DNA of 64,000 nt from contig JAKMXF010000188.1 of the NCBI GenBank assembly GCA_024704765.1, positions 553,015-617,014 on the forward strand, in the 5' to 3' direction. Each line of letters starts with the position of its first letter. Positions within the stretch are counted from its first letter, which is position 1. The notes under the pieces are model-generated. The model was not told the origin of the DNA, did no database searches, and was given only the letters and a program-made list of their open reading frames with translations. The stretch is from Oopsacas minuta. Lineage: Eukaryota > Animalia > Porifera. Position numbers and translations under genes: made by a program. Of the stretch, positions 3,657 to 51,671 are shown piece after piece.

Positions 3657-3708
<52 letters not shown>
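3657..3708. repeat. (TA)n followed by (TG)n microsatellite, probably the 5' end of a Helitron-like element
   Basis: About 21 TA units followed by 5 TG units. Confidence 0.9.
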
Positions 3709-3709
<1 letters not shown>

Positions 3710-16829: not shown

Positions 16830-19800
16830 TCAGAAAAGCGTTTCTTGACTTTCATCTATCAAAATAGACGTGATAACTAATGCATCATTGGTTGAACACT
16901 CGCGAACCTCCACTAATTGTACATTTGCATCGTTTGAAATAATTAGAGCATCCTTTCTTCGACTATAAATGAAATCATATCAAATACTTGAGGGCAAGTA
17001 GGTATGCACCGGATCCGGATCCAGAATCCGGTGTATGCCTAATTGCCTATATTTATATCTGAATGAATGGCAAATAATTCTGGTCCACCAAACAATTGAA
17101 TATGCTTCTAGCTTTGATAAATAATTAGTATTGTTAAAGTGTATTACTGAGAATTGCTAGATTAAAGTAGATATATATGTATTAACAAATTACTCAATTA
17201 TAATTACGCTATCAGTGATTATATAAGAGATTTGGATACTCAAGTCAGGTAATTGGTGCACCGGATCAAGAATTTATGAATCCGGCCGACTCTGGTGTAT
17301 GCCTAGGGTAACATCTATATAGCTATATAGTGCTTTGTAAATTCAAACATTACAGGATCTGAGCCCTAGTCCTCTCCACAAAAACATTAAACATTAGGAA
17401 CCCTAGGCCCCACCGACTATCCTGGATAGGGGAGCCAGGGTACCACCAGCCCTTCTGGGTTCGGTGCTGAACCCGACTCGAACCCCGAAAATGAATGTAT
17501 GTATGTATGTATGTATGTATATACGCCAAACCTCTGTATAACGGTCACCTGCACATAGCGCCCACCTGCTCAACGCGGCCAGCGGCCACATTATATAGTG
17601 GTCGCCTCCCATAAGGTCTTCTTTTGACAAGTCCCTGGGTGGCTATCATTAACTATTTCCGCTATATTATCTTAAATATCGGTTACTTGTCTTTAAGGCC
17701 AACTCCTCTATATCACCACCATTAACATAAAGTTACTACAATAATAGCGTATAACGGTCAACTTCCCTTTAACGGCCACTTTTGGTCAGTCCCTTCGGTG
17801 GCAGTTATAGACAAGTTTGACTGTATATATGTTTGTATGTCCAGAATTGATTGAAGAACCTGGTTTTTTGGCATGGTTCGGAGAATTTCGAGTCTTGGGC
17901 GAAAATTCACACCTATGACGAAATTATGGCGTCATTGTCACCTTTTTCGATTTTCGAATAATCACATTATTCACCACTGCCCAGCCAATATAAATGATAT
18001 AAAATTTGAAATTTGATTCACAAGTACCCATTTGGATGGACAATGAATAATAAAAAGTAAAAATTTCCGCAAAAATTTCCTCAACGCACTTAGTATCAAG
18101 TGTGATACCCGGTCACGTAGCAACCCAAACCATCAAGAAATTTAGCTATTAAATACTTACGCTATCCCGAGGCATTAAGCTGTCACGCAGCGACCTAACA
18201 AGCGAAGCGCGCTAGTAAGAGATAAATTACAAGGTAATTGCTGTAAGAAAGAACTTACGCAATCCCGATATTGTACACTCCCTTCCTTTTCTGCATAAGA
18301 TAGACGCACACTATAAGACTCACAACTGCTATAATTAGCAGAATAATCACAATTGATAATACGACAGCAGATATTTCTCCTGGAGTTAAGATCTGAGAAC
18401 AACGCCATCCAGGTTCACATAAACACTCATAATCTCCATTCTCTTTAATCTGACAGGTGGCGTTATAGTGACAGGGCTGAGAGAGACAGAGATTGGGTTT
18501 ATCACATCTCCTCAGTGCCCATTCTTCCGTACACTCACATGAATACTCACTGGAGAAGTCTTCGATTTCAATAATTTTGCTACAATCAGGATCATTATTT
18601 GGGCCCTAAATGAAAAGAAAATTTTATGAAGATACAACATGATTTTCTAATTTCTCATTTCACAGTTCTTTACACTCAGCAAATATTCAAATACTACAAT
18701 TCGATGCCTCCCTCACATACCTTACAAGTTGCGTCATTAAGACAGGGTTTAAATCTTATAGAGATTACTATAATGTAAGCTAGAGAGAATGCACCAAATC
18801 TGTCCAATGATACAATTCCAAATTGGTCTGTCCCATAGTAGTACGCTAGAGCTGTGTAGTTAAGAGAGAAATTTCTACTTGAAGCTGTGTATTGAGCAGA
18901 TATGTTTGGGTTGGAAGAGGGAGAAATCTCGCTCACTACTAGTTCACAGTATGAACAGTTTAGATACCTGAGGAAGTATTAAATGACAATACTCATTCTG
19001 GTATGCAATATTAATTTATTTCATATTTCAAATGCTGAATTATCTTACCTGAAATACACATAATCTCCATCATCCACATCATAACTATATCCCGTGAGTT
19101 GTAGGGTAACTACTGAGGTATTATCTGTCCTGTATAGAGTAATGAGGGAATTGACATTTTCCTGGTCTATCATTAGTTTAGGATTTTCATTAACTGATAG
19201 TATCTCGATGAGGAATTCATTATCTGCATACAATGGAGTGCCAAGTAATGAAGGAGTACCTGATGGGAATATATGTATATAGAGTCAAAGAATTTCCTAG
19301 ATCACAAATATGAAAACTTGAAAATGCGAAATCCGGGTTCAGCGTACTTTGTTACGCCATTGTAGCAGTTAAGAGCGAGTCTCTACTATTATTGTGGCAT
19401 CTCAAGATTTGTTTTCTTTATATTAATAAATTTACATATGATTAATTCAAAAGTGTGAAAATCAGATTCAGCACATTCGGTATATTTAAGTTATATTGAA
19501 TTCTGTTTACTTTTGATATAAACGATAAATACAGTTATGCGACATCTCAGATTGAGAAATTCGAATTCGATACAACATTCCATAAATCCTTCCCTTGACA
19601 ACGGACAAATAGACAAACAAACAAACAGACAGGCAAAAAATGGCAATTTGATAATATACAGTAAACTCCCGTTATAACCAAGTCGGATATAATGAAACTC
19701 CCCTTATCACGAAGTGGTCCAATGGTCCGTAAATCCTTCCATCTAATTACATTATATAAACTTTGTTTATAACAAATACATGGAAGGATACAATGAAATT

Positions 19801-22800: not shown

Positions 22801-25800
22801 TTTATTAGAAAAACAAACCTCATTAGATAGCAGACAAGGACAGAAATACGTTGTCAGTGTATCACCAGTTATAGTATCCTCTTTATCGAAGTTACAACTG
22901 CTACGAGAAGATACCCATTGCTGTTGCTCAGGGTTCCAACCAACAAGAAATGGTTGATTTGTTTCAACAATTCGAGATGCATTAAATTTTATTTCAATCT
23001 TCAACCAAGAAGGGAAGTTAACTCCGCCTATAGGACTTATGTAGAAAGAGGGACCGTGGAACTCTTGTATACGGGTGAAGAGAAATCTGTCCACTTGGGT
23101 GAGGGTGGAGCCAGGATCCACAATGTAACGCGTATACGGAGAGCTGAAAGGGACAGAGAGGATGTCATAATTAACCTTCATATCACTGAGTGAGAGGGGT
23201 CCAATGACAAATCCAGATAAATCTTGCAGGTCTTCAGAGAAGTAAACTTTACAGTTGGTTGGATAGATTAGTTGAGGGATGAATTGGCCAGAAAATCTAG
23301 AAGAATATTCAGCAAAGCCTTCCTCAATAGAAAGGTAATATTCACTATTACGTTGGTACACAGCATATGTATCAGTAGTATCTCTATAATAAGTAACTGA
23401 TGGTGTACCAGCATCTTTGCATTTAGGTTGAATAGCACAGAGTACGAGAGTTTGATACAAAATCATTCCAGGTTCTGCTTGTAAGATATTCTCACTCCCG
23501 GTATAAATACCTGCTGATTTATTCGCCAACATTATTATATCAGGAGTATTTGCAATAACTTGATCGTTTGAGTTACCATTACCAATTAATTGAGATCCTT
23601 CAATACGAATGGAGGAAGCATTGCCGAATGTTATCTCGAAAATGGGCATGATGTCATCCTTGTAAGGTTCTGTGCCTACTTTCCAGAAAATAGTTTGATT
23701 CTTTACAAGGTAATTATCTTCATAATGAGTAGGATAGAAACCAGTCCAATGCAAACCGAGAGAAGTAAGTTGTGTAGATAGGAAAGTATTTGGAATTATT
23801 GTATCGATCTTTGTTGAATACAAAGGTTCTATGACAGATTTAGAAATGTCAGGCTCCTGGTTCATAATCCTCACTCCCTGACTTACCAGTATTGTACTCA
23901 AACCAGCACCATTGATGGCTCTAACAATCACATAGTACTTGAGTTGTGGTATCAGCTCGAGATTGGTTATATTCACGGTTTTGATTGTGCCCACTGAAGT
24001 GAATTGGAGAGAATCAATATCAGTTACATTATCCGAGTAAGCTATTTCATAGTCATATATGTCACTTTTGGTGTCTTCACACTGATATTCCACAGCCAGT
24101 GAATTGTCACTATCCTGAGCACTCGTCTGTATTAACTGATCACTTCTCAGATCTCTTTGTACATGTTGTATAAGTGTACAGTTAGGAGGTGTTGTATCTA
24201 GCTGAATACCATCTGAGTAGCCGTAAGCTATCTCTCCTGTAGCCGTGTATCCTCTCACCTTCATATAGTACACATATGGTACAAATGTGATATTGTATTG
24301 GTATAGTTGATCCTCTGGAATACCTGTGTCAGTATAGTTGTAGGGAGTACATGTCACGTTAGTAAGGTTAAACGGATGAGTACAACCTGATTGCAAACTG
24401 AGCCCACTGGCTACAAACTGTATATAGTAGACGTTGGAATTGCATGTAGAGTTACACAGATTGGGTAGTGAGTTGTTGCAGCCTTCAACACAAGGAATAC
24501 ATGGTGAGGGTATAGACTGATATTCTCGACCCGCTGCAAGAGATACCTCAGTAGAACCATACTCTCGTCCTACTCCAACCTCAAACTTCACAAATGGTGC
24601 CTTTGGGCTATAGAATGGTGCTCCAAATTTGCAAACCCGACTGCTATCAGCTGGAAGATTGACATCAGTGAAATAGGCCGAGGTAGTAGGAGGAAAGAAG
24701 GGACTGGAGAACGACTCTACTCCTCCGTTAAAGTTCCTGACATGTAATACAAGGTAGATACTAGATCTCAGTTGAGGCAGATCAACAAGATTGCCTAAGA
24801 ACTGGCCGTCTACCACTAAATCCACAGTCCAGGTGCCAAGTGTAGCTGTACTAGGAGTAGTTGAACTGGTTCTGTAGAGTTTAAAGTCATACGTGTAGAA
24901 GGCAGCACTAGGATCATAGTCTAGATCTATCCATGTGTACCCAGTGTCTTCAGGAGTCTGACCTCTGTACCAGAATAAAGCTCTCGCAGGGCTGGAATTG
25001 TAAGAGGGGTGTAGTTGGAGACCAAACGCTTTGTAGGGTACTGGGTTGGGGTTGGGAGGAGGCATGTATTGACATGTACTGGGTGTTTGTGTTGGTAGAT
25101 TTTGGCCGAAGTTAGTTTGTGTGACGTTTTCCAGTTCATAAAGCATCTCATATTCCTGAACCATTGAAGCAGGTCCGTCCCAGAATAACACAGAAGTGAC
25201 GGCCTGGAATTCAGGGGCAGCCTTGATGCTAACACTCATTTCATTCAGGTCTACTACTGACATCTGTGTGACAGCAGCACCAGAGAGCATTCTCTCACGT
25301 TGGATGTCTCGCGTCATGCTGACCTTTAAAAATGCACTGTCAGTAGTGAATTCTATCTGTTGAGGGTGATACATTAGAGTTCTGCCTGTTGGATTGCTAG
25401 GTCCTACTGGGATTGTAGAAGTGATTGACTGAGTGATTGTGTCCCAATCTTCTGTCGTGGAACTTTGATTATACATACGTTCCATACACACAGCATCATG
25501 CTTTGTCCTCACAAGAGCTAGAACACCTTCAACCCTAGAGGTACTCCCTTGGTAAGGAGGAGAAAATTTCCAGATTGTTCCGTACTTAACTACTGCTGGA
25601 TTGAGAGAGTATTTTACCAGTTTGATAGGCTGTGACACGCTACATGATGTGAGTGCTGCTTGGTTGATAGAACGTAAAGCCACAAAGTAGAATTTACTTG
25701 TCACAAGTTGGATGACATAGAATGTATAATTGTTCACATTGTTAATCGTAGTAAATTCTGTCAAATTACTTATCTCATCACAATTGTGAATATTGCAGTT

Positions 25801-28800
25801 ATCTTGTTCAATGATTGCGATCTGGTAGTTGGATATATAACTCTCTGGATCGAAGAAACCTTCCCAATGAACAGCTAGAGTATCATTTCCGGTTATATAA
25901 TAGATCTGAGTTTCAGTTAATTCAGGTCGTACACTAGTAACATTGAATCCTATATTGAATTTGCCCTGAATAGGCGGTGTAGTGTCTATAACTATTGGAT
26001 GGGAGACAGCAGCTGTACACTGGAATGAATTATCAATTGCACGCACATAAGCGTAGTATTTGGTAGCTCCTACTAGATGTAAATTATCCGCAACCACTGA
26101 AGCTTGTAATACAGCTCTAGTGTACTGTCTAACATTGAAGTACTCGTTGAGAGGGTCAGCAGCGTTCTCCACAGTCTCACAAGAAAACTCGGCGAGATTT
26201 CCATCAGTACTGATTGCGTATTCATAGAATGCAATAGGAAGTAATGAGGTGAAATCTTTCCAAGTGATGTCAAGCAGTGTTGTGGCAGATTGGAATGAAG
26301 GGATCTCTACAGAACCTGGTTCAGCAATATTATTGAACTCTATCGGTTGTATTCCATTAGAAGTTGCCTCTGCCTGTTGGAAGGTGCCACTTGTACCTCT
26401 AATTGTGACGTAATAAGAGGTATTTCTTTGCAGTTCAAGTCCTCTTAGCGTTGCAGAAGTGTTCAGATACATATTCTCATACTCCACAACGTTGAATCTG
26501 TCCTCACCTCTCCGCCCCGTCCCTACTGCTATTTCATATTGAATAACCATTTCTGAGAGTCTCTCTGGATCAGTACCTCCAAATGAATTCCAATTGGCAA
26601 TTATGGAAGTCAAGGATGCTTGACTGTCAAAATCATACCCAGGGACAGGACCATCATACACTACTCCTGGAATAAGAGGATCAACTTGAATAGTGATACC
26701 ATTAGACCGAGAAGATCTCACATAACCAATAGAACTGTAAACTGTTACGCTGATATAAACCTTGGTATCTTGTTGCATTGCAAGGTTATCGTTCGAAGAG
26801 TGGCTAGTTTCAACACGTGTAAAGTTCTGAATGGTTGTTTGATTCATATAGAATATTGCCCAGTCATAGTGCACTGCAGGGCAAGGGTCATTGAAATTCC
26901 AATAACCTTCTAGAAAGGTGATACCAGCCTGAGCCTCTAAATCTTGGAATTCAGAGCCGTCATACACGTATCCAGGATCGGGGTATCGTAACGACAGATA
27001 GGTAGGATTGGAATTCGCCGCTTGGATCAGGCCGACTCGATTTGTTCCTCGAATAATTACATATATGACTTTATAACGCGTCAGGTCTAACCCTTCAATA
27101 AAGTACTCGTTCACTAAACCCACGTTGAAGAAGCTCACAATGTTCATTTGTCCTCGCTTTTCCCCAATACCAATCTCATAAAAATCCATAGGAGTCTCGT
27201 GATCAACGAAATCCTCCCATCTAATATGAATATCTGTGACGATAATCTTACACTGAACTCCAGATGATGTTGCATTCTCGTAATTGAATGTAGAGTTAAC
27301 TTCACCAGTAGGAAAGAAGGCAACTTGTGTTTGATCAGTCAATACGAATACAGACTGAGGAATGGGGGGAGAATCATCAATTGTTAAAGGAGCAAACGCA
27401 TGATTACTCAGTCGTACACTGTTAATAACATTCAGTGTGTACACCTGATCACCTACTTCTAGTGGTTTGGTGAAATTCCTGATGGTCACCGTAATGGCAT
27501 TTCTATCCAAGTATTCGTAATAGAAGGTTGTATCTATTTCCTCCTCTCCCAACATTATTTCGTAGCCATTGACCTCACTGTATTCATCAAATGCTCCATA
27601 CCAATTACATACCAATGAACTAGTGGTGGTGACAGCGTACTGGGTGCATGTGAATCGTAATTGGTCAGTATTGGGGATAAGTGTATCTATGGTGATACCA
27701 GGGGCGATAAGGAATGTAGATACACCTGCCTTGTTGAATGCTATGAGATGGAGTATGTTCGGCTCTCCTGTGTTTTCTGGTTCCACATCATTTGAGGCTA
27801 GACTAGTTCCACGAGTAAGTTTTGGCAGCTGTATATTAGCAGTATAGGGATAAGTGCCCACGTGATATTGTATGTTGTTAATACCACTTTGAGGATCTGT
27901 AGCACTCCATCTAGCTACAAGTGTAGATGGGTCGTATTGATATATCTTGTCATCAGATTGAGGATACTTATAAGTTACTCCATCAATTTGCTGTCCTAAC
28001 TCTGTTAGTATCAGATTAGGTTTAGTCCAGTCCACCAGTATTGCTAGAAACAATTACAAGTAATATAATATAATGCAACCTGTCAATAATTGTCCATTCA
28101 ATCGGAGACCACAACTCCTTGGATTATCCCATAAATAGACTACTACATAACACAGATAGGAAAGTAACCGAGCAACGAATATAAAAGAGAGGCTATTCTT
28201 ATAAATCTCATAAAAGTTCAATCAAGCCTCCAAAGTTTGTGACTTGAAAATGTAAAGAATCAGTTAAGACTTCTCAAAAGGTTCTAACGGCCATCCTTCA
28301 TCCTCGTTAAGGCGCATTCAAATCATGACATCATCAACATTCACATAAATGCTCATCAAAAATTGAATTTTTTACTTTTGAAATTCTTGTATATCGATTA
28401 ATTAATGTCTTTTTAGTAGTCTTAACTGATTCCTTACATCTTTCTACCTTGAAAAGTTCAGTTCACAAACTTTGAAGGCTTAATTTAGTTTTTATGAGAT
28501 TTATTCACATGACCATTCTATTTATTCGTTACTTGTCTACTTTCCTATCTGTATGATATAGTATTCTATGTCCTGTAATATCCAAATTTTACTGTACTTG
28601 TATCTACTCGCTAACAGCAATGTACATTTAATTAAGATATTATTGTAACAAAAAATAGATCTCTTAATATATTTTCATTGCTATACTAAATCGTAAAATA
28701 GTGCGAATAGAGCGTTTCATAAATTATGTATATTTGTAGCTCGAGTCTAATGCAATTACAAATTAGCACATTCTAACTCTAATACCAAACATATATGATG

Positions 28801-40800: not shown

Positions 40801-43800
40801 AGAGCATCGAATATGTTAAACCTTCTGATTCTACGATTTGTTGCTCCGGCTGGAGAATGCTGGACCTTTGTGTAGTTATAATAGTCAGATAGGATATCTG
40901 ACATTTCATCGGCTTTGGGATGTCTAATGTATTGCAATGTTGCCTCATAGCGAACTATCTCTTCTCTGTCTATCAGTGCAGAGGATAATATGACATCTGC
41001 TGCCTGTAGAATTAAGCAAGAAATACCTTTTAAAACATCATACTATAAGTATATTTGGTGTAAGCCAATTTTCCTGTATTTTACACATTCTACATGGTGG
41101 AAATAAAATTATAATCATACAGTAGAACTCGGATTTAACGTACTTAATTTTCAGAACTAAAATTTTCAGATTACATAGGATTCTATGTAAATACAACTCG
41201 GTTATAATGTACCCTTTATATCCGAGTTCTACTGTAATTCAAATTTATGAAAATTCAATATTAAAAGGTAAATGAATGAGTCAAAAATGTAAAATTCACG
41301 GCTATCAGTGGCGGCCATAGGACATTGGGGCCCTTGTGCAATATTCCTCATGAGGGTTCTTCCTAAATAATGGAAGATTAGTGCAACTTTATATACACAC
41401 CATAACAAGGGCGGCGGATGTGCTAAATAGCGGACAGGCCATAGCCTGACTGACCTGACCGTTTGCGCCGCCCTTGTAGTATATGTTTTGCCTGCATTAG
41501 ATAGCTGCTTTTGGTGATAACTTTTATATAAAGTATTGGATAATTGCATATCAAAAGAAGTGTACATGTATTATAAAGATCCGAGATATAATGGAGTTCG
41601 CTCATTTGCAACTCGGTTTTCTAAAACGTTAGCTAATAACATAATTGAGTCTGATTCCATTTCTTGAAATTTAGACTTGTCAAGGCATTTGCTGTTAAAT
41701 TTTAGGAACAAGTATTTTGGATAACTCACACCTGCTGAATCCAAAATCACTGTTCCCTAGCTGAGATATTACTTTAAAATAGCGGCTGTCGGCGAATTCG
41801 CAATAGATGCTCTAGGCGATAAGCTTTTAAAATCTCATCAAATCACTAGAATTGTACTCAGCATCAAATTACCAGCAATTTAATGGGTCAATTTACCATA
41901 TTGCGACCTCTTTTGAGAATGGAATGTAGCACATTCCTGCGTTGTCAAGGAAAACATATTTCTCCAAACATGGCGACCTCTATAATGATATAAACAATTT
42001 CCTTGACAATGTAGGAATGTGCTACATTCTATTCTCAAAAGTGACCGGAGTATGGTCACGTGACCCATCAAATTACTGGAAATTTAATGCTGAGTACGAG
42101 TCTAGTGGTTAAAAGTTGATTTAGAAGTTGAACTTTTACAAGGAAGGTAAACATTATCATGTAAATTAACCAGCATCTTGATTATGTTCCGTCCATTTAA
42201 TGCTTTAGCAATCCACCCTGTCCCAATTAACCAGGACTTGAGACTGAGGTCTATAACGATTTTCGGCGAGAAATTGTAGCTTTAAGAGATGTATATACAT
42301 CTGAAATCGGGTTATTTTGTCTTATCGGATTTTTGTCTATCTGAGGATGTAAACAATTGAAAATCTGTTCGACTTATTTTGTCCTATAGTATATTTCTAG
42401 TGATTTTCAAAATACTCGATTAGTATATGCTCTAATTACTAGTAAAATATTTGCAGCTTTCGTGTTTATTATCAATTGGTGTATATTAGCTATCAAAAAT
42501 CGTCTTGTATATCAATATAATTATTTAGCAATATGGGTTATTTTGTCGTTTTAGCAGTGCAATCAAATGGACAAAATAACCTGAGTTCAATTGTCTCAAT
42601 TTAAGAGTTGCATGGTGGTCGAGATATAAAATTAGAACAGACTAGGTAATAAAGAAGTCCATGCATACTTGTTGATTATATCATAACACTGTTACACACT
42701 ACATGTACTTATATTTGATACCGACCTCATCAGTGTCGTATTGCCTCATTGAGTGAATAGCAGATCTCCGGAGAAGAGATGGAGCATGTTCTGACTCTAT
42801 ATAACTCTTCAGCAAGTTGAAACTCTTTTCATTAGCTGCGTTACCCAATGAGTCTATCAAGCTTGATTGTCTACTAAGACCAATACTCGCATTCGAAAGC
42901 TTGATTGCAGAGTCGACAGAATTCTCTCTTCTGTACCTGGAATACAATTGACACATGTAAGGATTCTGTTAGCAGGGCAATCAAGAGCCTTATGGGGCTC
43001 CTTGTCAATTTTTTAATACGGTCCCTTGATATAAATTGCAAAAATTAAGTCATGACAAGTGGATAAAGTTACCAAAGTTAAAAGGAACTAATGTGAGGCT
43101 TTCGTCGAGGATTCCGATCTGATCTTTGGTTATGTTTTGACGGTCATTTAATAATTATATTCCATGGCCGGCGGACCCGGGCCTGTATTTGAGTGTACTT
43201 TAATGAAGTTATTCTAAGGCTGATACCTATCTATGTATACTTGTATGCAGTAGTATTCTTATTACCTGTTGATTGTAATTATGATAATGTGATATAACTT
43301 ACTAGTTACTACATCATGTAGATGACTTTTTTGTCCATTAATTAATACACATGTAAAACTGCAATCAAATGTCTTTTGGGTAATTTGATAATACTAAGGA
43401 ACTGTCTCCGAGAAGCGGACATTTCTCAAATACGACAAAAGCCATGTCCCCAATGTGCCAGTTATTCGGAGACTCTACTGTATTGACACCGACCTGTGCT
43501 AGATTTCTCGCATTTGTGACAAGCACGTAGGGAGGTGTTGTCCACAGTCTGTGCTACCCCTAGATTATGGAATTGGGTATTTTGAAACGAGCTACATTTG
43601 TTACTCATTGCCACCCGGCTGGTGTCAATATACAATATGTGGCTCTTAATACCATCAACCAGTCGCTGCCAATAGCCTCACCCAGAGATGGAACCGGTTA
43701 GCTTTTTCATGACCCGACCCGACCGGACCGGCCGGTCGACCGGTCGACTGGTAACTTTGACTATATACTGCCTGGCCGAAAGTATTGGAACACCCTGCCA

Positions 43801-46800
43801 CTTGTGACACAAGTGGCACACGGCGAGAATATGTTCAATATTCTGTGGATATAGCAGAAAGTAGAAAATCTCTCAAGGTTGATGAATTAATATTTATTCA
43901 AAAATGTATGAAATAATTTTCAGTTATGGTCTAGTTTAATCGAACTGCTAAGTTGAAGTTCTTGGTCAATAAGATTACAGTATCAAATTCAGATTTACCG
44001 TATTCAGAAATTCTGACCGGCCAGTCGAAATCTTCGACCGGTACCCGACCCGACCGGTTCCATCTCTGGCCTCACCCATATTTAATGTATTAACTACTTA
44101 TCTAGTAGGGACGGAATTGGGCCAAATCTAGGTTTTGTATGCAAATCTTGTTACAAGTATGGCTAGTGATTTTTGATAATATGGCTCTTATTGACGTATT
44201 AACGAAATTTAATCATTAGCCATTCATTAATGTACACAAATAGAAATAGTAACCTCTAACCTGTCATGGTCATGTGGTAGTGTCATTCTGTGTAACTTAT
44301 TTATTATCTTATTAGAGAGCAGAGGATCAGATTCTTTCAGAGTAGCACTCATTGAGCCTAGAGCTAGAACAGCCATGTTAGAGAGTGTGTGGTTATGTAG
44401 TTGTATTGGAAAATGGGTGGGATGGAATGCTAACTGGTCCAGAATATCAATAGCAAATAGAGATGGTAATTTAAAAGTAGCGAGGTGTGGTAGTATACTG
44501 ATTGCCATTTCTCTCTCGATACAGCTGGTATTAAGGAATGTAACAAGCGCGACATGACAGGAGGCCCTGCTACACATACCGAATGCATCAATTATAGCAA
44601 ACACATACTCCAGTCTGCTCGTTAGAGGACAAGACAGAAACCTAGTTGCTAACTGCTCAATATCTTCATCTCTCATCAACTCTATTATGTTAACAATCTC
44701 TCTAATTGTCTTAACACAATCTGTATCTTTGATATTAGGGTAGCAGTTCTCTGTCAGAGAGAGCTTTGAATAAACCTGAATGAAAATAGAAATATGTCAA
44801 ATTTGTTGATATTTTAACAAACATTGACGAATTTGTTGGTTTCGAATAATGATGTGCAAATGTGTACTGTGCGTTTCATAGCAAATTGTGTTGTGGTGAA
44901 TTAGGAACTCTTAGTATGGCACTTGGAGAGTAAATTTGTTTATAACATAGACGATAATATACTACATCATTGTATTAAGTCATACCTTTGAACTAGCTTT
45001 GCTGTAAGATAAAGGATCCTTGATCACTCTCTGAGCTATGATACTGTCTAGAATTAGACCAGATGGCTCAGTGATAGAAGCAGGGTCGAAGCTAGTTTTA
45101 GTTATCAGATTAATGTGTGCGATTCCAGAAGCTTTTATAGGAGGAGGATCTTCTTTAGAGCGATATTTCTGAGTTGAACTCGTTATATCAGCGCTATCCA
45201 ACACTTTAATTGAATTGATGTGACCTGGTGCAAAGACCCAATATAATATATTATTGTTATGATGGAAAATACAGTCCTGCTATCGAACATAACATGACAT
45301 AGGAATATAGGATACTTTCCATAGGCCTAGGTAGCAGGGGCGTCGATTCCAAATATTTATTAGTGGAGGACAAGTTATTTTTATGTCCACTTTTCTGAAA
45401 TGCTGGTAGAAGTAAAGATTTCGCCTCCTCCCCTAATAATCTAAATTTGGGGGCGAGTCGAATATTTTCTCCGTAATTTTAGTCATTGAAATCAAATTCA
45501 AGCCCCCATTGACGTAGCACCTCGTCCGTCTGTTCCTGGCTTCCTGATATAACAGGATCATTCTATAGATGCTGTAACATATACCCTATGGGAGACCTCA
45601 CTTTTGGCCGACCACATTTTCATCCGTGCAATGTCACAGAATCAAGGGTGGATCCAGGGGTCCTAAATGAGGCTTAGTCCACCAAATTAAGCAATTTACC
45701 CCCGAATTAGTGTAAATTATTAGTGAAATTCAAAATCACGGAAATAAGTATCAGTTTCTATAGACGATTACCGTACTCTACCTTCAGTACTACAATATAC
45801 AGTTTGGTCCGATGCGACCAATTTTAATTGTTCATAACCATAAATGTAAAATCTGTGTTTTGAAAACTAGTTCAGCCTCTACCGCCCTAAAACATTTAGT
45901 TAATTTTCATATTCTTACACGAAGAATATATGGACAGGGTGGTTGACCCTTAATCAACTATTACAAAAATATTATTTCATTGTGACTTGATTTCTAACTG
46001 TAGGAAATTAACATAGAATTCTGAGGCTGTAGGTAAATCGAAGCGATGAACCTAGTGAAAAAAATTTCCTTAGCAGGGCTACTCGGGGCTAGACAAAATA
46101 TTGGGGGGGGGCGCGCGAAATGATACTCTCGCCCCCTTGCCCCCTCAGGATCGACGCCCTTATCTGGTAAGCCATAGCCTATTAAAGATACAGCTTGATT
46201 GGCTAATGAGAAAATTGTAGGGAGGCTCGGAGGTGTATCCTCATTTTGGAAGAACTAATCATTTTATGGTTTCCAGATATGAAGAATCAATTGTAAGGTT
46301 TCCCGGACATATTTTACAATCCCTGACTAGCAAAAAGGTGGTATAATGTGTGTAGTTATTCGAACATACTGTACTGATTAAATAATAAGAAACTTGTCGT
46401 GAATCAAAATTGTATAATATCACATATAAAACAAGTTTGAAACTGAATAGTTCGATATTAGAGTGTCAATCGATAGGATGAATTTTCAAAAACTGTGAAC
46501 AATACCGGCGTTCCGCTGGTATTTTTCCCAGTTTTGACATTAGAATACTGTCTGTATTTAATTTGAATTTCATTCATCAAATCTTGACACCTAACTAGGA
46601 TATTTACTTCAAAATAAAAATTGCTATGAATTTTGTTTCTAAATTGCAAAATGTGTGATATTTAAAACCTTGCTAGTGAGCCAAAAGGCGTCAAAACATG
46701 ATTACTTTCATATGAGTAATCATGCATTGACGCCTTTTGGCTTTATCTCAAAATAAATAAAGCCAAAAGGCATCAAAACATCCAATCATATCTATATAAC

Positions 46801-49800
46801 TATAAATGAATATAGTTTGATAGATATGATTGGAGGAGACCCCTAAAATTGGAGGGACCTCCCCAAATGCAGATTCAAAAATATAAATGGGGGTCTCCCC
46901 CAAATGAAACCCTACATGTAATATACAACTTTCGAAAAAGCACTGTCAGATCCTATAGTATTGTTTCAATGCACCCAAACAAAATTAACAAATCATTTTA
47001 CAATTGGAACAGTGTTGTTTGGGTAAGCTAGGATGTACTGTATGTATTTGTTCATGTTTATGTGTGTGTATAATAAACACATTTCTAAATAGTCAATCCG
47101 GACAGCTGATTACGAAAAAACCTAAAAACGCTAAGTGTTCACCCAGCTGCGGCGCGCCGCGCGATCAAACTAAGCGCGTTAATGAACTATAAAACGTTTA
47201 CTTTTGTTTCATGTAATAATCAATTGTGACTTATAATTATTTACCTGTTTCTTTAATAATATGTATGTCCTTTTTGCGAGTGTGATCGTTCTCAAAATCG
47301 TTATGTATCTTGCTGTAGGTAACTGTATTGCTGTCTTCTTTAACCGAATATCTAATGTGGAAAAGAACATTCTATAAATTTACTCGAATTAGTACATTTT
47401 TCTGTTGAGTAACCTTTATTGGCAAAACAATTATGATTTTACAGTAGAGCTCCTGAGAACAGTCTGCCGACTGTTGCAGGAATGTGACAAACAGTTTGTC
47501 AGAGCAATCAGGATATCATATAGTAATTCAGTATAGCAATTCATAAGCGCTCATACTAAAAAACTGGCTAAATAAAATCATATACTATAAGTACTTGTAG
47601 TTTAATTGTAACACTACTTCAATACATACAGTAGAACCTCGTTAGTACAACAAGGTTACGAATTTCCGGATAATACAAACAAATATTTAAACAAAATTAG
47701 GACAGCCTCATTCTGTCTTTAATATATGGATAGAACATTTGTCACCTTTTCTAAGAGTTATGTCAATATTTCTCTTCTCTGATATTTGAACTTTATCAAA
47801 GTTCAACCACTTAAAGCAGGCATAACAAATTTCCGTTTATATCTTCCTGGGCAAACAAAATAAAATAATTGAATATAAATATACTACGAGCCTTGGGCTC
47901 GTCACTTCGCGATGACCTCAGCGCATTGCGCCTCGAGGTATTCAAAGGACAAACAAACAGACAAAACAATTGAAGTTTAATAATATTGATGTTGTTTACA
48001 ATATTCAGACTCAGCATACTCGATTACCTCAGTATTGTCGTTGAAAGTATGATTCTACCTCATTTTTGAAATTTGTTTACTTTATATTCATGAAAACAAC
48101 AATAAATTTACATATGATTAATCCAAAAGTGTGAAATTCGGATTCAGCATGTTCGATATATTTAGTGCAGTTTATTGAATTCTATTTACTTCCTTGATAA
48201 ACACGATAAATACATAGTTTGTGACAATTTCAAAATTTCATACCGTAAATCCTTTCCTTGACAACGGACAAACAACAAACAAGCAAACAGACAACAATTG
48301 TGATTTAATAATATAGATTTAGAATTTTGAAATTTACGAATTTATATTCATCACAGATTACAGAAATCGGCGATGATTATAAATTTGTTTACATTATATT
48401 TTTCAAACCATTAGAACCTCGTTGATACGTACACGAGGGTGCTTTCAAAATTTGTACTTATCTGGAATACGTATTGACCGGAGCAATATTAATTGAAAAC
48501 CAGTGTAGAGTGCGGTTGGTCAGGTTTCATCCGAACCAACTCTAAATTGGCTCGGTTCAAACCTGACCAACTCTAGGTTAGAGCAGTGAGTATAGAATTA
48601 CAGAATAAACTTTAGCTTTTGCACTGACAGCTGATATTGTATTGGCGTAATTGAATGTAGATCATGGTGAAAGAGGATGAACTTGTAAATTGCATAAAAA
48701 TGTTGAAATGTGAAAATTTATAAATTTATAACCGAAATCGTGAATCACCTCACAGATAAGGTGACGAAGTATTCTACTAAGTGCAAATTAATGGTATACA
48801 GTACAGTGGAAGCCGCTTAATCGGGATAGCCGCTTAAACGGGATAATGGTTTGGGAACAGATTTTTTACATAGAAAAATCGTCGGATAATTGGGACATCG
48901 AATCGGTTAATCGGGATTTTTTATCCCGATTACCCGAATATTTGTAAGTTCATAATCGGTTATTCGAGATTTCTTATCCCGATTAACCGGATATTAATTG
49001 TATTCGCTTAATTGGGATTTCTATCCCAATTTAATGATTGTATATTTATTCAGAATCATTGTAAAATGGTTTGTTGTAAAACTAGGAATTTTGAATATTC
49101 TCTACAACTATAACAATATAACACCGATGCGATTACCATTTACTATACTAAGATTGTAAACATTGCTCACTCGCCTCAGGTTCCATTGGCTATTCCACCG
49201 TGTATAATTCCCTCAATAATGACCACACTGTTGGATATCCAAACGTTTTGCTTGGGTTGCGGTAATACGTACATGCACAATTATTTAAACTATATTTTCT
49301 TACTTTTTAAGTATATATCGTAAAGCATTCTATGACCTCTTGAAGCGGGACTATACCCATACTACAACCAAATGTCTACTAGACCTAGATAAATCAGGAT
49401 TAGTAGTATAGAAATAAGATATATCTGGTCATGTGACAATGAAAAACTAGTTTTGAATACCTAAATAATCATAATCAGTTAATCGGGACAAAACATTGAC
49501 TCCCGAGCTGTCCCGATTAAGCGGCTTCCACTGTACTACAAGAGTAAATTCAAAATTCAAAATTGGTAAGAGAACGAAATGTAAATTTGGTTGGGTGTAT
49601 ATATAAGAGTAGACCGAAAACAGCTTTGGAGAACAGGAAATATTTCGCCAGCCAGGTAGTGTTTGTAATAAATAGGATTCATCTAACACTGAATTTCGCA
49701 TTACAAATACAGTCAAACCTGCTTGCCGCCACCTGGGAACAATCCCTCCTATTTCCCATTATTAATTTATAATGACCTCTGTATAGCGGCTACCTGATCA

Positions 49801-51671
49801 ATGCGGACAGCGACCACCATTTTTGGCCCCTTATGGTGCTAAACCTGTCTATAACGACCACCATCTCTATATAACGGACACTTCCTTTATCTAACGGCCA
49901 CATTATATTCTAGGTCAACTCCCATAAAGTCCACCTATGACAATTTTCTTGGGTAGCCATCGTTAATCGTGTTCGGGTAACGTAGAATAACTAACCTGGC
50001 AGAGTGAGTCCCTGAGTGATCCAAGTCAGGTACACGGTATGCCCATCCTCCATATTTGTCAGTTCCCTTTTTCCTAACATATTCATGCAATCTGAGAGAG
50101 AAAGAGCTTGTCACTGCTTTCTTAAGCTGCAATACTGCTCTCTCTTCTTCTTCTGGATAGCGTACCTTGCTATAGAAACTCAATTTAGAACTAACTATTC
50201 TAATTTATGTAATTATAATGTCAGTTAATATTACAAACCTGATAAGTCCATCTTGTCTCTGATAAAAAGAAAACCATTGAGTTAAGTTCATTTGATGTTC
50301 AATTATATCATGACCATGTTGTTTAGCCTCTACACTAACTAATTTAGCATCAGTTAGTATAACTTGTACAGCTGTGCAGTTAAGAACTCCAAATAGATCT
50401 ACTCTCATCAGAACTCCTTCTGTCTCTTCACACTGACTCATTCCATATGCGAAGAGGAAAGCTTTTGCATTGAAGTTGAATTTATCCACTTGATTCAACG
50501 TTATCTGTGAATTATCGTCATTCAATTACAGTAGAACCCGTTAATACGTACACCAAGGAACCGTCGAGATTTGTACTCCTTATTCGGAGTACGTATTAAC
50601 CGGAGTAAAACCAATTGCATATTCATTGACAGACTAAAATTGTGGTCTTTAATCAGCAACCTAGTGTACTAGTACCGCCTATATGAACAAACTACCTAAG
50701 CAACCAGGGTTCGTGAACAATTTGAGTTGTTGTTAAGCGTCGTTTTGAAATGTATATTATTAAATCTCAATTGTTGTTTGTCTGTTTGTTTGTTTGTTGT
50801 CAAGGAAAGGAATTATGATATGCAATTTTGAAATTGTCGCATAACTATGTATTTATCGTGTTTATCAATGGAGTAAATAAAATTTAATAAAATTTCACAC
50901 AATATATCGAACATGCTGAATCTGAATTTCCCACTTTTGGATTAATCATATGTAAATTTATTGTTGTTTTTATGAATATAAAGTAAACAAATTTTCTAAA
51001 TCTCAAAATTTACGTAGATACTTGCTCTCAACAGCTACAAAGGGGGTTGATCTTACAAAATAATTCAATAATATATATGCCCATATACTTATGTTTGTGA
51101 ATTGTTCTAAATATATCTATATTATAATACTCTAAATGTATTATAACCAAATGATCGCAAAATAGGGTTGGAATCATCAATGAGATTTAATTTCAACAAA
51201 ATACCTATAAATTTTCTCATTCAAATTGTGATTCAAGTTAGAACATAATTTGGGTTAAATTCAACCAATTTGGGGCCTGAATTGAGGACTAAAGCCCCAA
51301 AAGCCCCCCTTGGCCACGCCCCTGGTCGATGGTCCACCATAAATCATTGACGGTTAAACTTCGTTTATGTGAACACCAAGTTACCCCTGTGTAGTTATTT
51401 AGAGCAAGTCTGTATGTATATTTGCTAAATTCGAATCTAAATAGTACACCATAAATCCTTTCTTTGACAACGGACAAACAGACAGACAGCCAATCAGAAA
51501 ACAACAGTTTAGATCTGATAATAATAGATTCTATAGTCTGTTTATGCTTACCTCAGAAGAATATGAGTATTCATACTGCGAACCTGCACAGAATGGAGTA
51601 GCAATATCTGTGATAACTGTTGAAGTCAAGTTGAGTATCAGAAGCAGAATTAGAATCTGCTGTAGGATCAT
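16830..51671 (-). CDS. Giant type-I membrane protein, about 5103 aa, 20 exons: signal peptide, vitellogenin/LLT-like N-terminus, M23-like, PAN/apple, FN3-like repeats, ConA/GH16-like, cadherin-like, 2 EGF, TM, PDZ-type C-terminus
   Basis: Exons in transcript order: 51552-51671, 50239-50504, 49996-50169, 47245-47351, 44986-45224, 44261-44775, 42726-42936, 36173-41003, 32588-32903, 32007-32179, 31164-31816, 30383-30533, 29681-30135, 28957-29566, 22819-28043, 20824-21151, 19049-19259, 18721-18967, 18259-18605, 16830-16962. All introns are GT-AG with matching phases; the sum is 15312 nt = 5104 codons. Starts MILQQILILLLILNLTSTVIT and ends ...DESQETLF. The donors of exons 11 and 15 have possible alternatives. 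Confidence 0.85.
17524..17823. mobile_element. Tc1/pogo-type MITE (CAGTCAAAC.. TIR, TA flanks)
   Basis: Right end GGTGGCAGTTATAGACAAGTTTGACTG|TA; degenerate left end. The internal AACGGCCAC repeats and core are shared with a truncated copy at 49710-49975. Confidence 0.7.
17825..18215 (+). mobile_element. Helitron-like non-autonomous element in the last intron of the giant gene
   Basis: Starts TATATATGTTTGTATGTCC and ends AGCGAAGCGCGCTAG|T (CTAG followed by T, GC-rich subterminal tract). Confidence 0.65.
18297..18760 (-). other. Two EGF-like domains and the transmembrane helix of the giant protein
   Basis: PCLNDATCK|GPNNDPDC...YSCECTEEW...C and NLCLSQPCHYNATCQIKENGDYECLCEPGWRC, then ISAVVLSIVIILLIIAVVSLIVCVYL (18297-18374) and a basic stop-transfer QKRK. 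Not shown in the ORF track. Confidence 0.85.
19300..19655 (-). mobile_element. Helitron-like repeat, 5' portion with (GTTT)n tract
   Basis: Family core plus CCTTGACAACGGACAAATAGACAAACAAACAAACAGAC, also seen at about 22765, 48255, 50780 and 51460. Confidence 0.65.
19659..20090. mobile_element. pogo/Tigger-type MITE, 432 bp
   Basis: TA|CAGTAAACTCCCGTTATAAC ... GTTATAACGAGAGTTTACTG|TA; 19/20 TIR match and TA target duplication. Confidence 0.9.
21888..22366. mobile_element. pogo/Tigger-type MITE, 479 bp, with duplicated right end
   Basis: TA|CAGTAAAACCTCCAAAAGGTGAACAC ... GTGTTCACTTTTGGAGGTTTTACTG|TA; internal GTGTTCACTTTT repeats; 23-bp tandem duplication at 22348-22401. Confidence 0.88.
33101..34009. 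mobile_element. Tc1-like foldback element, 909 bp, with 365-bp inverted arms
   Basis: TA|CAGTCAATGGACAAAAGTATTCGAC ... GTCGAATACTTTTGTCCATTGACTG|TA. Arms 33101-33465 and 33645-34009 differ at only about ten positions by eye; 179-bp non-coding spacer. Confidence 0.93.
34147..35003. mobile_element. Foldback/TIR element with TGTAGGGG...CCCCTACA ends and G/C-run subrepeats
   Basis: About 190-250-bp inverted arms containing repeated AAATTTGGGGG(N)GCCCCCC motifs; a related end fragment lies at about 46835-46920. Confidence 0.8.
36570..36790 (-). other. PAN/apple domain within the giant protein
   Basis: ELEECATDCLQFPTKCFSFNYAPVSHICELL...YSYYEK fits the C-x3-C-x5-C-x-SF-x-Y...C-x-L...YYEK pattern. 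Confidence 0.8.
41120..41234. mobile_element. 115-bp MITE (CAGTAGAACTCGGA TIR, TA TSD)
   Basis: TA|CAGTAGAACTCGGAT ... ATCCGAGTTCTACTG|TA. Confidence 0.85.
41844..42107. mobile_element. 264-bp palindromic foldback element (CACTAGA...TCTAGTG)
   Basis: Arms CACTAGAATTGTACTCAGCATCAAATTACCAG...TTTTGAGAATGGAATGTAGCACATTCCT..TTGTCAAGGAAA mirror on both sides of a short centre; no clean TSD. Confidence 0.75.
43683..44068. mobile_element. hAT-superfamily MITE, 386 bp
   Basis: Perfect 15-bp TIR CAGAGATGGAACCGG/CCGGTTCCATCTCTG, perfect 8-bp TSD GCCTCACC on both sides, and subterminal ACCCG/GACCG repeats. Confidence 0.95.
48804..49533. mobile_element. pogo/Tigger-type MITE, 730 bp
   Basis: Perfect 23-bp TIR CAGTGGAAGCCGCTTAATCGGGA, TA TSD, and many internal AATCGGGA/TCCCGATT repeats. 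Confidence 0.93.
50751..51045 (+). mobile_element. Helitron-like repeat, 5' portion
   Basis: ATGTATATTATTAAATCTCAATTGTTGTTTGTCTGTTTGTTTGTTTGTTGTCAAGGAAAGG plus the family core; reverse-complement copy at about 48035-48318. Confidence 0.7.

Follow-up and report, generated by a model that had tools for sequence, protein, structure and literature searches.

Large lipid transfer proteins (LLTPs) are usually treated as three soluble animal families, the vitellogenins, the apolipoproteins, and MTP (PMC10799875). Vitellogenin/lipovitellin (1LSH, 9ENR), apoB-100 (9EA7), and MTP (6I7S) share with the sponge protein described here a signal peptide, a beta-barrel, a helical solenoid, and beta-strands. 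These classical LLTPs are tied to the head of the sponge protein by Pfam Vitellogenin_N, by Foldseek (E about 1e-14), and by VIA (Z 17-21 over ~450 residues); phmmer found no sequence-level match to them. The sponge protein differs from them in the helix bundle and LytM domain that come after the LLT module and in an additional ~3,300-residue FN3-type stalk, EGF domain, membrane helix, and cytoplasmic tail. Unlike the classical LLTPs, its family is found outside animals as well.

A second point of comparison is the decapod dLp/HDL-BGBP precursor (4,831 aa), a giant LLTP from which furin cleavage yields a lipoprotein plus a beta-glucan-binding protein (PMC8416765). The two proteins resemble each other in being giant LLTPs of ~5,000 residues, and the decapod precursor, which is furin-processed, joins a lipid-carrying part to a beta-glucan-binding part. 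However, it is a soluble haemolymph lipoprotein for which LytM, PAN, an FN3 array, a GH16-like fold, and an anchor are not reported, and a sequence relationship between the two proteins was not detectable.

The sponge protein, most likely from a hexactinellid, is encoded in the window, by which we mean the whole 64,000-nucleotide stretch of DNA that was analyzed. A first-pass annotation of these letters had proposed a single phase-consistent gene for a protein of ~5100 aa, and its coordinates, strand, and size were right. We consider it very likely that the identity and architecture of the protein are as described below.

A single expressed 20-exon gene for a 5,103-residue type I membrane protein

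The minus-strand gene runs from a start ATG at 51671 to position 16830, with a TGA stop codon at 16832-16830. Its 20 exons (15,309 nt, 5,103 aa) are separated by introns that all have AG/GT borders and consistent phases, and internal stops are absent. The exons are as follows.

51552..51671, minus strand: exon 1, aa 1-40, with the start codon, the signal peptide, and the first LLT beta-barrel strand
42726..50504, minus strand: exons 2-7 (50504-50239, 50169-49996, 47351-47245, 45224-44986, 44775-44261, and 42936-42726), aa 41-544, LLT beta-barrel and helical solenoid
36173..41003, minus strand: exon 8, the first giant exon, 1,610 codons, aa 545-2154
28957..32903, minus strand: exons 9-14 (32903-32588, 32179-32007, 31816-31164, 30533-30383, 30135-29681, and 29566-28957), FN3-like units with D-x-T-P-P linkers
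22819..28043, minus strand: exon 15, the second giant exon, 1,741 codons, aa 2941-4682, with eight FN3-like units, a putative GH16-like domain, and Cys-rich stretches (open frame and repeat HMM)
18721..21151, minus strand: exons 16-18 (21151-20824, 19259-19049, and 18967-18721), a membrane-proximal beta-rich region, possibly cadherin-like
18259..18605, minus strand: exon 19, EGF domain, transmembrane helix, and start of the cytoplasmic tail
16830..16962, minus strand: exon 20, cytoplasmic tail ending in ETLF, and the stop codon

In a public RNA-like sequencing run (X4), depth was 160 to 180 on exons and 0 to 6 on introns. RNA support within the gene covers the introns between exons 8 and 13, and exons 1-7 and 13-20 are modeled without it. 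Spliced contigs with GT..AG ends spanned introns 32904-36172 (a base-exact match), 32180-32587, 31817-32006, and 30534-31163, and a fifth intron was bridged by a loose contig end in which 30381 reads into 30133 and below. The open stretch 31055-30678 was considered as an exon and rejected; intron 30534-31163, which is spliced out, contains it, and nothing in Oopsacas corresponds to it.

The remaining exons were placed by other means. Exon 1 rests on its open reading frame, the hydrophobic N-terminus, a match to the N-terminus of Oopsacas P0010, and a GT donor, and exons 2-7 rest on collinear tblastn matches to Oopsacas P0010, Pfam Vitellogenin_N, splice sites, and phases rather than on RNA. 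Exon 8 is an open frame with 61-74% identity to 14 glass-sponge proteins, and its donor at 36173 is present in a spliced contig. The borders at 29681/29566 and at 28957 are based on phase and homology only. Exon 15 is 53-76% identical to glass-sponge proteins and 25% identical to a Mya arenaria protein that covers 97% of the exon length. Exons 16-18 are collinear with Oopsacas P0022 and partly with Saccoglossus. Exon 20, a phase-compatible acceptor followed by an open frame without RNA or alignment support, is the least certain.

The closest named relative, 59-61% identical, is annotated in the glass sponge Oopsacas minuta as LOD99_10427 and LOD99_10426 (GCA_024704765.1, contig JAKMXF010000035.1), two hypothetical proteins of 2,527 and 2,464 aa whose genes are 81 nt apart. 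This annotation of two adjacent genes is what would favor the view that the window model merges separate genes, and the first-pass annotation had itself named the 32904-36172 intron as a possible split. However, spliced contigs cross that intron and the next four and span both candidate break points. The Oopsacas locus is also collinear with the window gene exon for exon, has an equal domain set, and encodes a tail that ends in ETVF, and the annotated Oopsacas "start" methionine falls inside an FN3-like unit, with 41 codons upstream of it conserved with the window. Single models of ~5,000 residues are present in four other phyla, and RefSeq models of Haliotis, Saccoglossus, Ylistrum, and Branchiostoma are collinear with the window between 41006 and about 22900. 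A nonfunctional relic is likewise at odds with exons that are stop-free in 20 of 20 cases. Merged genes or a relic are therefore highly improbable explanations, which we regard as largely refuted; the Oopsacas locus is one gene, and its split annotation, contradicted by splicing at the window gene, is wrong. The reference annotation is corrected accordingly.

The lipid-transfer-like head and its LytM domain

The signal peptide claimed at first is borne out by a hydrophobic N-terminal stretch, MILQQILILLLILNLTS. Pfam Vitellogenin_N matched 44230-44796 (E 8.5e-5, 21.7 bits, model positions 319-463) and, collinear with this first match, 42702-42968 (E 0.06, 12.3 bits, model positions 483-522). 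The window exons score below the cutoff of 24 bits because each was scanned alone; the relatives exceed it (30.6 bits in Oopsacas P0010, 30.3 in Haliotis, and 44.3 in Spizellomyces). The N-terminal fold was modeled on the 61%-identical Oopsacas protein rather than on the joined exons of the window, and the AF2 model of Oopsacas P0010 residues 1-660 (51 sequences, pLDDT 79.9) places the barrel at residues 35-290, followed by helices at 300-571. In Foldseek, the top 11 matches to this model were all LLTPs (E 4.5e-15 to 2e-9), and the next match had an E value of 6e-5. VIA gave Z scores of 17 to 21 to lipovitellin, apoB, MTP, and bee vitellogenin over 430-459 residues, with the best (Z 20.9, 459 residues) to lipovitellin; HEAT-only matches reached Z 14. 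On the evidence of this model, the N-terminus is predicted to have the LLT fold, a beta-barrel with a helical solenoid, which had been set beforehand as the test of the lipid-transfer reading.

The head continues into exon 8, in which the following elements were recognized.

40566..40802, minus strand: beta-strands, candidate LLT C-sheet, aa 612-690
39654..40526, minus strand: long amphipathic helix bundle, aa 704-994
39240..39647, minus strand: degenerate LytM/M23 (LECT2-like) domain, aa 997-1132
37407..37844, minus strand: sheet of very long (about 22-residue) beta-hairpins, aa 1598-1745

The candidate C-sheet corresponds to strands 68-146 of model mad0e23f1f14d (low pLDDT) and to strands 590-647 of the Oopsacas model, and it matched MTP in Foldseek (E 5.6e-4) with a sheet pLDDT of 40-60. 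Pfam matches to DUF1943 and DUF1081 were not found, and a VWD domain was not matched in any exon at Pfam E values up to 10. Judged by the missing VWD domain and the presence of a membrane helix, both read from the sequence, the protein is not a vitellogenin proper.

The helix bundle, claimed earlier as a long amphipathic region, appears as helices 160-450 of the exon 8 model with pLDDT about 70-80. Its matches to alpha-pore-forming toxins (AhlB, ClyA, and MakA) and to designed bundles (Z about 12) were set aside as a generic helical-bundle likeness. The beta-hairpin sheet (model strands 1054-1199, pLDDT 70-83) gave no informative structural or language-model match; pleurotolysin, MAC, and the RCD-1 pore (probability 0.3-0.6) and its language-model neighbors (score 0.81) were at chance level and were rejected.

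The domain first called M23-like has the fold common to LytM/M23 peptidases and vertebrate LECT2, superposing on Staphylococcus aureus LytM (2b13) with a VIA Z score of 13.1 and an rmsd of 2.2 A over 111 residues, and its family profile matched LytM (E 1.1e-5) and LECT2 (E 3.6e-5). The fold assignment thus stands, with the metal ligands lost. In the HxGxD motif, Lys and Gln replace His and Asp (the window reads K-D-G-L-Q), and in the HxH motif Phe replaces the first His (the window reads F-I-H), leaving the last His alone; in the sponge copies, substitutions affect two of the three zinc ligands as well as the catalytic His. The zinc ligands are likewise replaced in the noncatalytic LytM domain of EnvC. 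LECT2 is small, secreted, and single domain, whereas the sponge domain is part of a giant mosaic protein. Both motifs are intact in some mollusc, echinoderm, and amphioxus relatives, and because several bilaterian members retain them, the domain probably began as an M23 peptidase.

The stalk, the membrane helix, and the tail

Beyond the head, the features below were identified.

36567..36740, minus strand: PAN/apple domain, aa 1966-2023 (Pfam PAN_1, E 3.4e-6; score 27.2 bits, cutoff 21.4)
24532..25584, minus strand: putative GH16-like (ConA-like lectin/glucanase) jelly roll, aa 3760-4110
23896..24117, minus strand: canonical fibronectin type III domain, aa 4249-4322 (Pfam fn3, E 1e-10, 42.1 bits)
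18405-18488, minus strand: EGF domain in exon 19 (Pfam E 9.8e-7)
18297-18368, minus strand: transmembrane helix, aa 5024-5047, 24 hydrophobic residues followed by QKRKG

The PAN domain, the EGF domain, and the transmembrane segment were all read correctly in the first-pass annotation, as was its estimate of at least a dozen FN3-like repeats linked by D-x-[TS]-x-P. There are 12 such linker motifs, and an iterated repeat HMM seeded with one unit gave 15 matches corresponding to 13 to 14 units of one repeat family. The unit that is positive for Pfam fn3 belongs to this family (E 1.4e-22 with a repeat HMM from the other units).

The domain first described as ConA-like is probably a GH16-like jelly roll, as indicated by three weak but concordant lines of sequence evidence. 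Its protein-language-model neighbors are GH16 (score 0.95, 19 of 30 matches); Pfam Glyco_hydro_16 matched 2 of 13 orthologues (best E 0.013) and did not match the window copy itself; and the sole matches of its profile in the PDB were four GH16 lichenases (E about 0.06), including the motif FDxxxD[FY]HTY. The GH16 catalytic motif E-x-D-x-(x)-E is not conserved, with the first Glu alone kept, Leu at the Asp position, and a variable last Glu (HMMER alignment and paralogs). In the GNBP/betaGRP proteins of invertebrates, noncatalytic GH16-like domains serve as glucan sensors. The GNBP/betaGRP/LGBP pattern-recognition proteins have a GH16-like jelly roll without the conserved catalytic motif, as is predicted for the sponge domain, but they are small and soluble, and the likeness of the sponge domain to them is weak (E 0.01-0.06) and comes from sequence rather than from a computed fold.

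A cadherin-like region had also been claimed. In exons 16-18, no Pfam cadherin match was found at E values up to 10, and the domain appears only in distant full-length relatives, with Big_9/Cadherin_4/5 near the C-terminus in Haliotis and Ylistrum. The cytoplasmic tail has 56 residues and a PDZ-ligand-like ETLF end. When both giant exons were compared as whole-exon profiles with PDB sequences, nothing was significant, and domain-sized profiles alone gave PDB matches; Pfam searches with the small exons singly were mostly blank. A SAP match (E 0.006, under cutoff) and BCMA/TNFR-like matches (E about 0.5) were not relied on.

Family members, processing, and possible function

Relatives of ~5,000 residues, all unnamed, were found in amphioxus, an acorn worm, molluscs, echinoderms, Capsaspora, and chytrid fungi, in agreement with the first-pass annotation, which mentioned similar uncharacterized giants in marine invertebrates. 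By sequence comparison, they make up an uncharacterized family of chytrid fungi, Capsaspora, and many nonvertebrate animals, apparently a lineage apart from the three classical LLTP families, and literature searches found no published description of a giant LLT-head family. Since the family reaches chytrid fungi and Capsaspora, the LLT fold appears to be older than animals. A membrane helix is missing from several full-length relatives (Haliotis, Branchiostoma, and chytrids); anchoring is therefore not shared by the whole family, and a receptor role cannot be general.

Two basic sites bear on how the protein might be processed.

40821..40835, minus strand: RRIRR, furin-type site, aa 601-605, in the disordered loop that joins the helical domain to the first beta-sheet
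37296..37307, minus strand: RSRR, second basic site, aa 1777-1780, just N-terminal of the stalk

At the first, 35 of the 45 aligned family members, the one from Capsaspora among them, have R-x-x-R, and the equivalent loop of the Oopsacas model has a pLDDT of <50. The second is nearly invariant in glass-sponge copies and less canonical outside sponges, and its loop occurs in animal members only. Given the conserved R-x-[KR]-R and the second site before the stalk, the head may be processed and perhaps shed. The protein could then be a lipoprotein-type precursor in which the anchor serves biosynthesis only and a convertase frees the LLT head and helices as a soluble carrier or yolk-like store, as in apolipophorin II/I or dLp/HDL-BGBP. 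Family-wide conservation of R-x-[KR]-R, the second sponge site, the members without a membrane helix, and the precedent of furin-processed giant LLTPs (PMC8416765) all favor this possibility. However, the site with the strongest conservation is internal to the LLT module, where a cut alone would leave the head attached; the second site is canonical in glass sponges only; and ~3,300 conserved stalk residues and an ET[LV]F tail are hard to fit to a biosynthetic handle. We consider such a precursor unlikely.

It is also possible that the protein is a structural adhesion or matrix component (cell-cell, cell-spicule, or syncytium cohesion) in which the FN3, cadherin-like, and EGF parts are the working modules and the LLT head serves as a scaffold that binds proteins instead of lipid. 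The 13 to 14 FN3-like units, the EGF domain, and the PDZ-ligand-like tail fit such a role, as do the ends of the relatives, which carry cadherin-like, EGF_CA, fn2, FG-GAP, or C-type-lectin domains. Nothing speaks directly against it, but the head of LLT module, helix bundle, and LytM domain is conserved from chytrids to amphioxus, which points to the head as the functional core, and we find adhesion doubtful as the main function.

Taken as a whole, a surface receptor that holds a lipid-binding head and has lipid or microbial-envelope ligands is the best explanation, and we give it an even chance of being right. The earlier idea of a tethered lipid-binding module on a long stalk therefore holds as far as a membrane-anchored LLT-like giant is concerned and is qualified by the basic sites, the anchorless relatives, and the low-confidence cavity sheets. 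The function itself, as a receptor for lipid or microbial-envelope ligands, is a tentative proposal that could well be wrong. In such a receptor, the lipid-binding head and modules derived from cell wall enzymes would be held far from the membrane and would capture or sense ligands of a lipidic or microbial-envelope kind; food bacteria, symbionts, and lipoprotein-like particles are candidates. Cleavage by furin-type convertases at the conserved basic sites would turn the head into a subunit that is noncovalently attached or can be released, much as happens with processed lipoprotein precursors, and the tail would link the protein to scaffolds of the cell cortex. In the sponge protein, both domains of enzymatic origin are degenerate, and ligand binding by them is assumed.

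A broader and rather improbable scenario makes the family a deep fourth branch of the LLT superfamily, older than animals and perhaps close to an ancestral giant surface or secreted mosaic in which a lipid-binding LLT head, an active M23 peptidoglycan peptidase, and a glucan-binding module caught and broke up microbial prey. The soluble carriers vitellogenin, apoB, and MTP, and vertebrate LECT2, would then be later, reduced derivatives; the sponge receptor would serve bacterial feeding or symbiont sorting; and the Capsaspora homologue, CAOG_009637, could be the sensor that triggers aggregation in response to lipoproteins and lipids. Such aggregation is described in Capsaspora with no receptor named (PMC11399711).

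The distribution of the family would move the origin of the LLT fold to before animals and provides concrete genes with which to ask what its first role was. The occurrence of this fold beside a LytM/M23 domain that some relatives have kept intact and a putative GH16-like domain points toward microbes, and thus to feeding or immunity rather than yolk, and may offer an invertebrate context for the origin of LECT2. In the sponge, an animal that lives on captured bacteria, the protein is a candidate surface receptor.

One expressed gene of 20 exons

The gene lies on the minus strand of the window, where two very long open frames, at 36114-40937 and 22747-28053, are accompanied by numerous smaller ones in the interval from 51671 to 16830. 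Exon borders were set by splice-site and phase arithmetic with homology as a guide, and the resulting model has 20 exons totaling 15,309 nt, or 5,103 codons. All introns are GT..AG, no stops fall inside exons, and the phases are compatible. The first-pass annotation, made from sequence alone, had proposed a protein of about 5,100 amino acids running from 51671 to 16830, and the 20-exon sum agrees with that size and those end points.

Exons of the gene model (window positions)
51671-51552, minus, exon 1
50504-50239, minus, exon 2
50169-49996, minus, exon 3
47351-47245, minus, exon 4
45224-44986, minus, exon 5
44775-44261, minus, exon 6
42936-42726, minus, exon 7
41003-36173, minus, exon 8
32903-32588, minus, exon 9
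32179-32007, minus, exon 10
31816-31164, minus, exon 11
30533-30383, minus, exon 12
30135-29681, minus, exon 13
29566-28957, minus, exon 14
28043-22819, minus, exon 15
21151-20824, minus, exon 16
19259-19049, minus, exon 17
18967-18721, minus, exon 18
18605-18259, minus, exon 19
16962-16833, minus, exon 20, then TGA ending at 16830

Two separate genes, split at the intron 32904-36172, had also been considered. Four public sequencing runs from one sample, all containing the locus, were compared over 30301-36300. Three of these are DNA-like, because introns and exons were covered alike. The fourth, run X4, had a depth of 160 to 180 over exons versus 0 to 6 over introns, and its contigs skip 32904-36172, 32180-32587, 31817-32006, and 30534-31163, each of the four skips being bounded by CT..AC on the plus strand and hence by GT..AG on the gene strand. 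A loose X4 contig end at 30381, reverse-complemented, reads GTTTTAGTCGACTTAACACCACCTAAGATA, which is the window sequence from 30133 downward; therefore, the intron 30136-30382 is also spliced out. Because the library type is not on record, we infer from the exon and intron depths and the skipped introns that X4 is RNA; its junction support consists of separate contigs for separate junctions. The spliced X4 contig contradicts a split at 32904-36172, and the locus is one expressed gene.

Window 33100-34100, inside the same intron, is a very high-copy repeat with many variant contigs and a summed contig depth of 10^4 to 3x10^5 in all four runs (flanks, about 100 to 500). The DNA-like runs also yielded contigs without 64 nt at 31869-31932 and without 60 nt at 34805-34864. 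Splicing was rejected as the cause since the ends are not splice-like, and these gaps are intron indel variants or haplotypes.

Relatives in Oopsacas and beyond animals

With exon 8 as the query, a word-index search gave 14 proteins (50 to 74% identity), mostly ORF-level calls made on ENA and Logan assemblies. The sole named match was Oopsacas minuta LOD99_10427 (P0010; 2,527 aa), which has Vitellogenin_N and PAN, and exon 15 matched LOD99_10426 (P0022; 2,464 aa). These gene models are neighbors on the same strand of JAKMXF010000035.1 (L001), with 81 nt between them; contig and window are collinear at the level of single exons. P0010 spans the counterpart of the 36172/32904 junction. The split between the two models falls where the window's gene is spliced (30383 to 30135), and the annotated start methionine of LOD99_10426 is internal to an FN3-like unit and has 41 conserved codons upstream, so the two models (boundary, L001 32053-32134) are one gene and the split is an annotation artifact. 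In two further assemblies, from different samples, two giant ORFs are likewise separated by small ORFs. A hexactinellid sponge is the most likely source of the window. Short ORFs in the introns of the LOD99 gene (L001 20583-20969, 33228-33523, and 15720-15845) match translations of window stretches 61232-61873 and 3706-3795 at 60 to 80% identity and probably represent one transposon family.

An exhaustive search with P0010 residues 1 to 1200 returned 157 proteins, several of them near full length and all of these unnamed. The family is older than animals.

Relatives and their lengths
Branchiostoma, 5,244 and 5,363 aa
Haliotis, 5,123 aa
Saccoglossus, 4,932 aa
Ylistrum, 4,640 aa
Argopecten, about 3,400 aa
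Anneissia, partial
Capsaspora owczarzaki CAOG_009637 (P0232), 4,741 aa
Spizellomyces punctatus (chytrid) SPPG_08216, 5,053 aa
Geranomyces variabilis (chytrid), 5,052 aa

Pfam matches in Haliotis were Vitellogenin_N, PAN at about residue 1860, fn3, and Big_9/Cadherin_4/5 near the C terminus; those in Spizellomyces were Vitellogenin_N (44 bits), fn3, four EGF_CA, fn2, and FG-GAP. Between 41006 and about 22900 of the window, four animal full-length models are collinear with it, and Saccoglossus additionally aligns with exons 18-19. In a simple hydropathy scan, Oopsacas, Saccoglossus, and Ylistrum scored for a C-terminal membrane helix; Haliotis, Branchiostoma, and the chytrids did not. Our literature search found no paper describing a giant LLT-headed family, and reviews name only three families of large lipid transfer proteins (LLTPs), namely, Vtg, Apo, and MTP (PMC10799875).

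Head, LytM/M23 domain, and candidate processing sites

The N-terminal fold was computed on P0010 residues 1 to 660, not on the window's own joined exons, using an alignment (A2) of 51 family members. The model (pLDDT 79.9) consists of a beta-barrel (35-290), a helix stack (300-571), a disordered loop (575-589), and beta-strands (590-647). Its top 11 Foldseek matches in the PDB were apoB-100, honey-bee vitellogenin, MTP, and lipovitellin (E 4.5e-15 to 2e-9), followed by a nuclear-pore solenoid at E 6e-5. VIA-align superposed it on lipovitellin with Z 20.9 over 459 residues (model 29-567 onto chain 17-620), and other LLTPs gave Z 17-21 versus Z 14 for helix-only HEAT repeats. The window exons are 50 to 66% identical to the LLT region of P0010, and two of them match Vitellogenin_N collinearly. 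Because of this modeled fold, the exon identity, and the Vitellogenin_N matches, the proposal of an LLT-like N terminus stands, and the modeled head has the LLT fold.

Exon 8 residues 1-1200 were folded with 56 sequences (alignment A3; pLDDT 67), and the long amphipathic helical region noted in the first-pass annotation is present.

Features of the A3 model (exon 8 residues, minus strand)
end of solenoid
68-146, beta-strands, low confidence
160-450, long amphipathic helices
453-588, compact beta-domain, pLDDT about 90
619-730, disordered stretch
737-822, helices including a sub-threshold SAP-like motif
830-952, beta-sandwich
1054-1199, sheet of very long hairpins, preceded by helices

The SAP-like helix-extended-helix motif (window 38568-38639) of this extracellular protein falls below the Pfam cutoff (E 0.006), and the same weak Pfam match recurs in the Oopsacas protein. 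Structure and language-model searches gave no informative match for the long hairpin sheet.

The compact domain matched Staphylococcus aureus LytM (Z 13.1, rmsd 2.2 A, 111 residues), with similar values for lysostaphin, EnvC, and others, and its 40-sequence family profile (A6) matched LytM (E 1.1e-5) and LECT2, a small secreted vertebrate protein (E 3.6e-5). The domain has a LytM/M23 fold, and the earlier M23-like call holds for fold and profile but not for the active site: in the domain alignment, sponge copies have K-x-G-L-Q and F-I-H where M23 enzymes have H-x-G-x-D and H-x-H, so that only one of the three zinc ligands is left and a catalytic histidine is also missing. The sponge domain would be a binding module at most. 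Both motifs are kept in several mollusc, echinoderm, and amphioxus relatives (in A6, the molluscs and amphioxus P0139, P0101, P0072, P0110, P0069, P0108, P0070, and P0073), so M23 peptidase activity may survive in part of the family; an enzyme is the probable ancestral state of the domain.

Two basic motifs are candidate processing sites. RRIRR sits where the solenoid gives way to the first beta-strands, within the disordered loop that joins them. Of 45 aligned family members, 35 have R-x-x-R at this position, Capsaspora and molluscs among them; some chytrids lack it. RSRR lies about 30 residues past the hairpin sheet in a loop restricted to animal members; glass-sponge copies hardly vary at this site, which is less canonical in the other members. 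Furin processing of a giant LLTP precursor is documented for decapod dLp/HDL-BGBP (PMC8416765). RRIRR and RSRR may be cleaved by a convertase. We consider it unlikely that the protein is a released lipoprotein-like carrier.

Stalk, membrane anchor, and proposed function

The expected PAN domain scores above the Pfam cutoff. An FN3-like repeat HMM iterated from one exon 11 unit gave 15 matches over exons 8-15, among them the sole Pfam-positive fn3; some are intron-cut halves, and together they represent 13 to 14 units. The D-x-[TS]-x-P motif occupies 12 linker positions, and the earlier count of at least a dozen repeats was correct. For a protein with such a stalk, a structural adhesion role might also be envisaged, and we regard it as improbable, to about the same degree as a released carrier.

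Exon 15 residues 820-1170 contain the motif W-x-x-L-x-F-D-P-[ST]-x-D-Y-H-T-Y. Language-model neighbors were GH16 in 19 of 30 matches (score 0.95), Pfam Glyco_hydro_16 matched weakly in 2 of 13 orthologues (best E 0.013), and a PDB profile search returned, also weakly, only four GH16 lichenases (E ~0.06, two collinear stretches). Because these three individually weak lines agree, a GH16-like (ConA-like) jelly roll is the best reading, and to this extent the proposed ConA-like domain is retained; the catalytic E-x-D-x-E is not conserved. A Cys-rich stretch at window 24440-24540 (exon 15 residues about 1166-1199) has weak TNFR/BCMA-like profile matches (E about 0.5-0.9). Exons 16-18 had no Pfam match, and the cadherin-like region proposed earlier has its basis in distant relatives only. 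Exon 19 encodes both the EGF domain (E 1e-6) and the membrane segment that had been predicted, a 24-residue hydrophobic helix with a basic stop-transfer. The exon 20 tail ends in ETLF, and its Oopsacas counterpart ends in ETVF, which may be class I PDZ ligands.

The protein combines a degenerate LytM module and a probable GH16-like module, also degenerate, with a PAN domain, an FN3 stalk, a membrane anchor, and conserved basic sites. We tentatively suggest that a predicted lipid-binding head and cell-wall-derived binding modules would be presented far from the membrane, that the head would be processed by a convertase, and that the protein would act as a surface receptor capturing or sensing lipidic or microbial ligands. 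This reading is possible rather than probable, and what is left beyond it and the carrier and adhesion roles falls to something else. The family also has a member, CAOG_009637, in Capsaspora, one of the unicellular relatives of animals. LDL and host lipids induce aggregation of Capsaspora, and the paper describing this names no receptor (PMC11399711); a link between CAOG_009637 and this lipid-induced aggregation is a matter for speculation.
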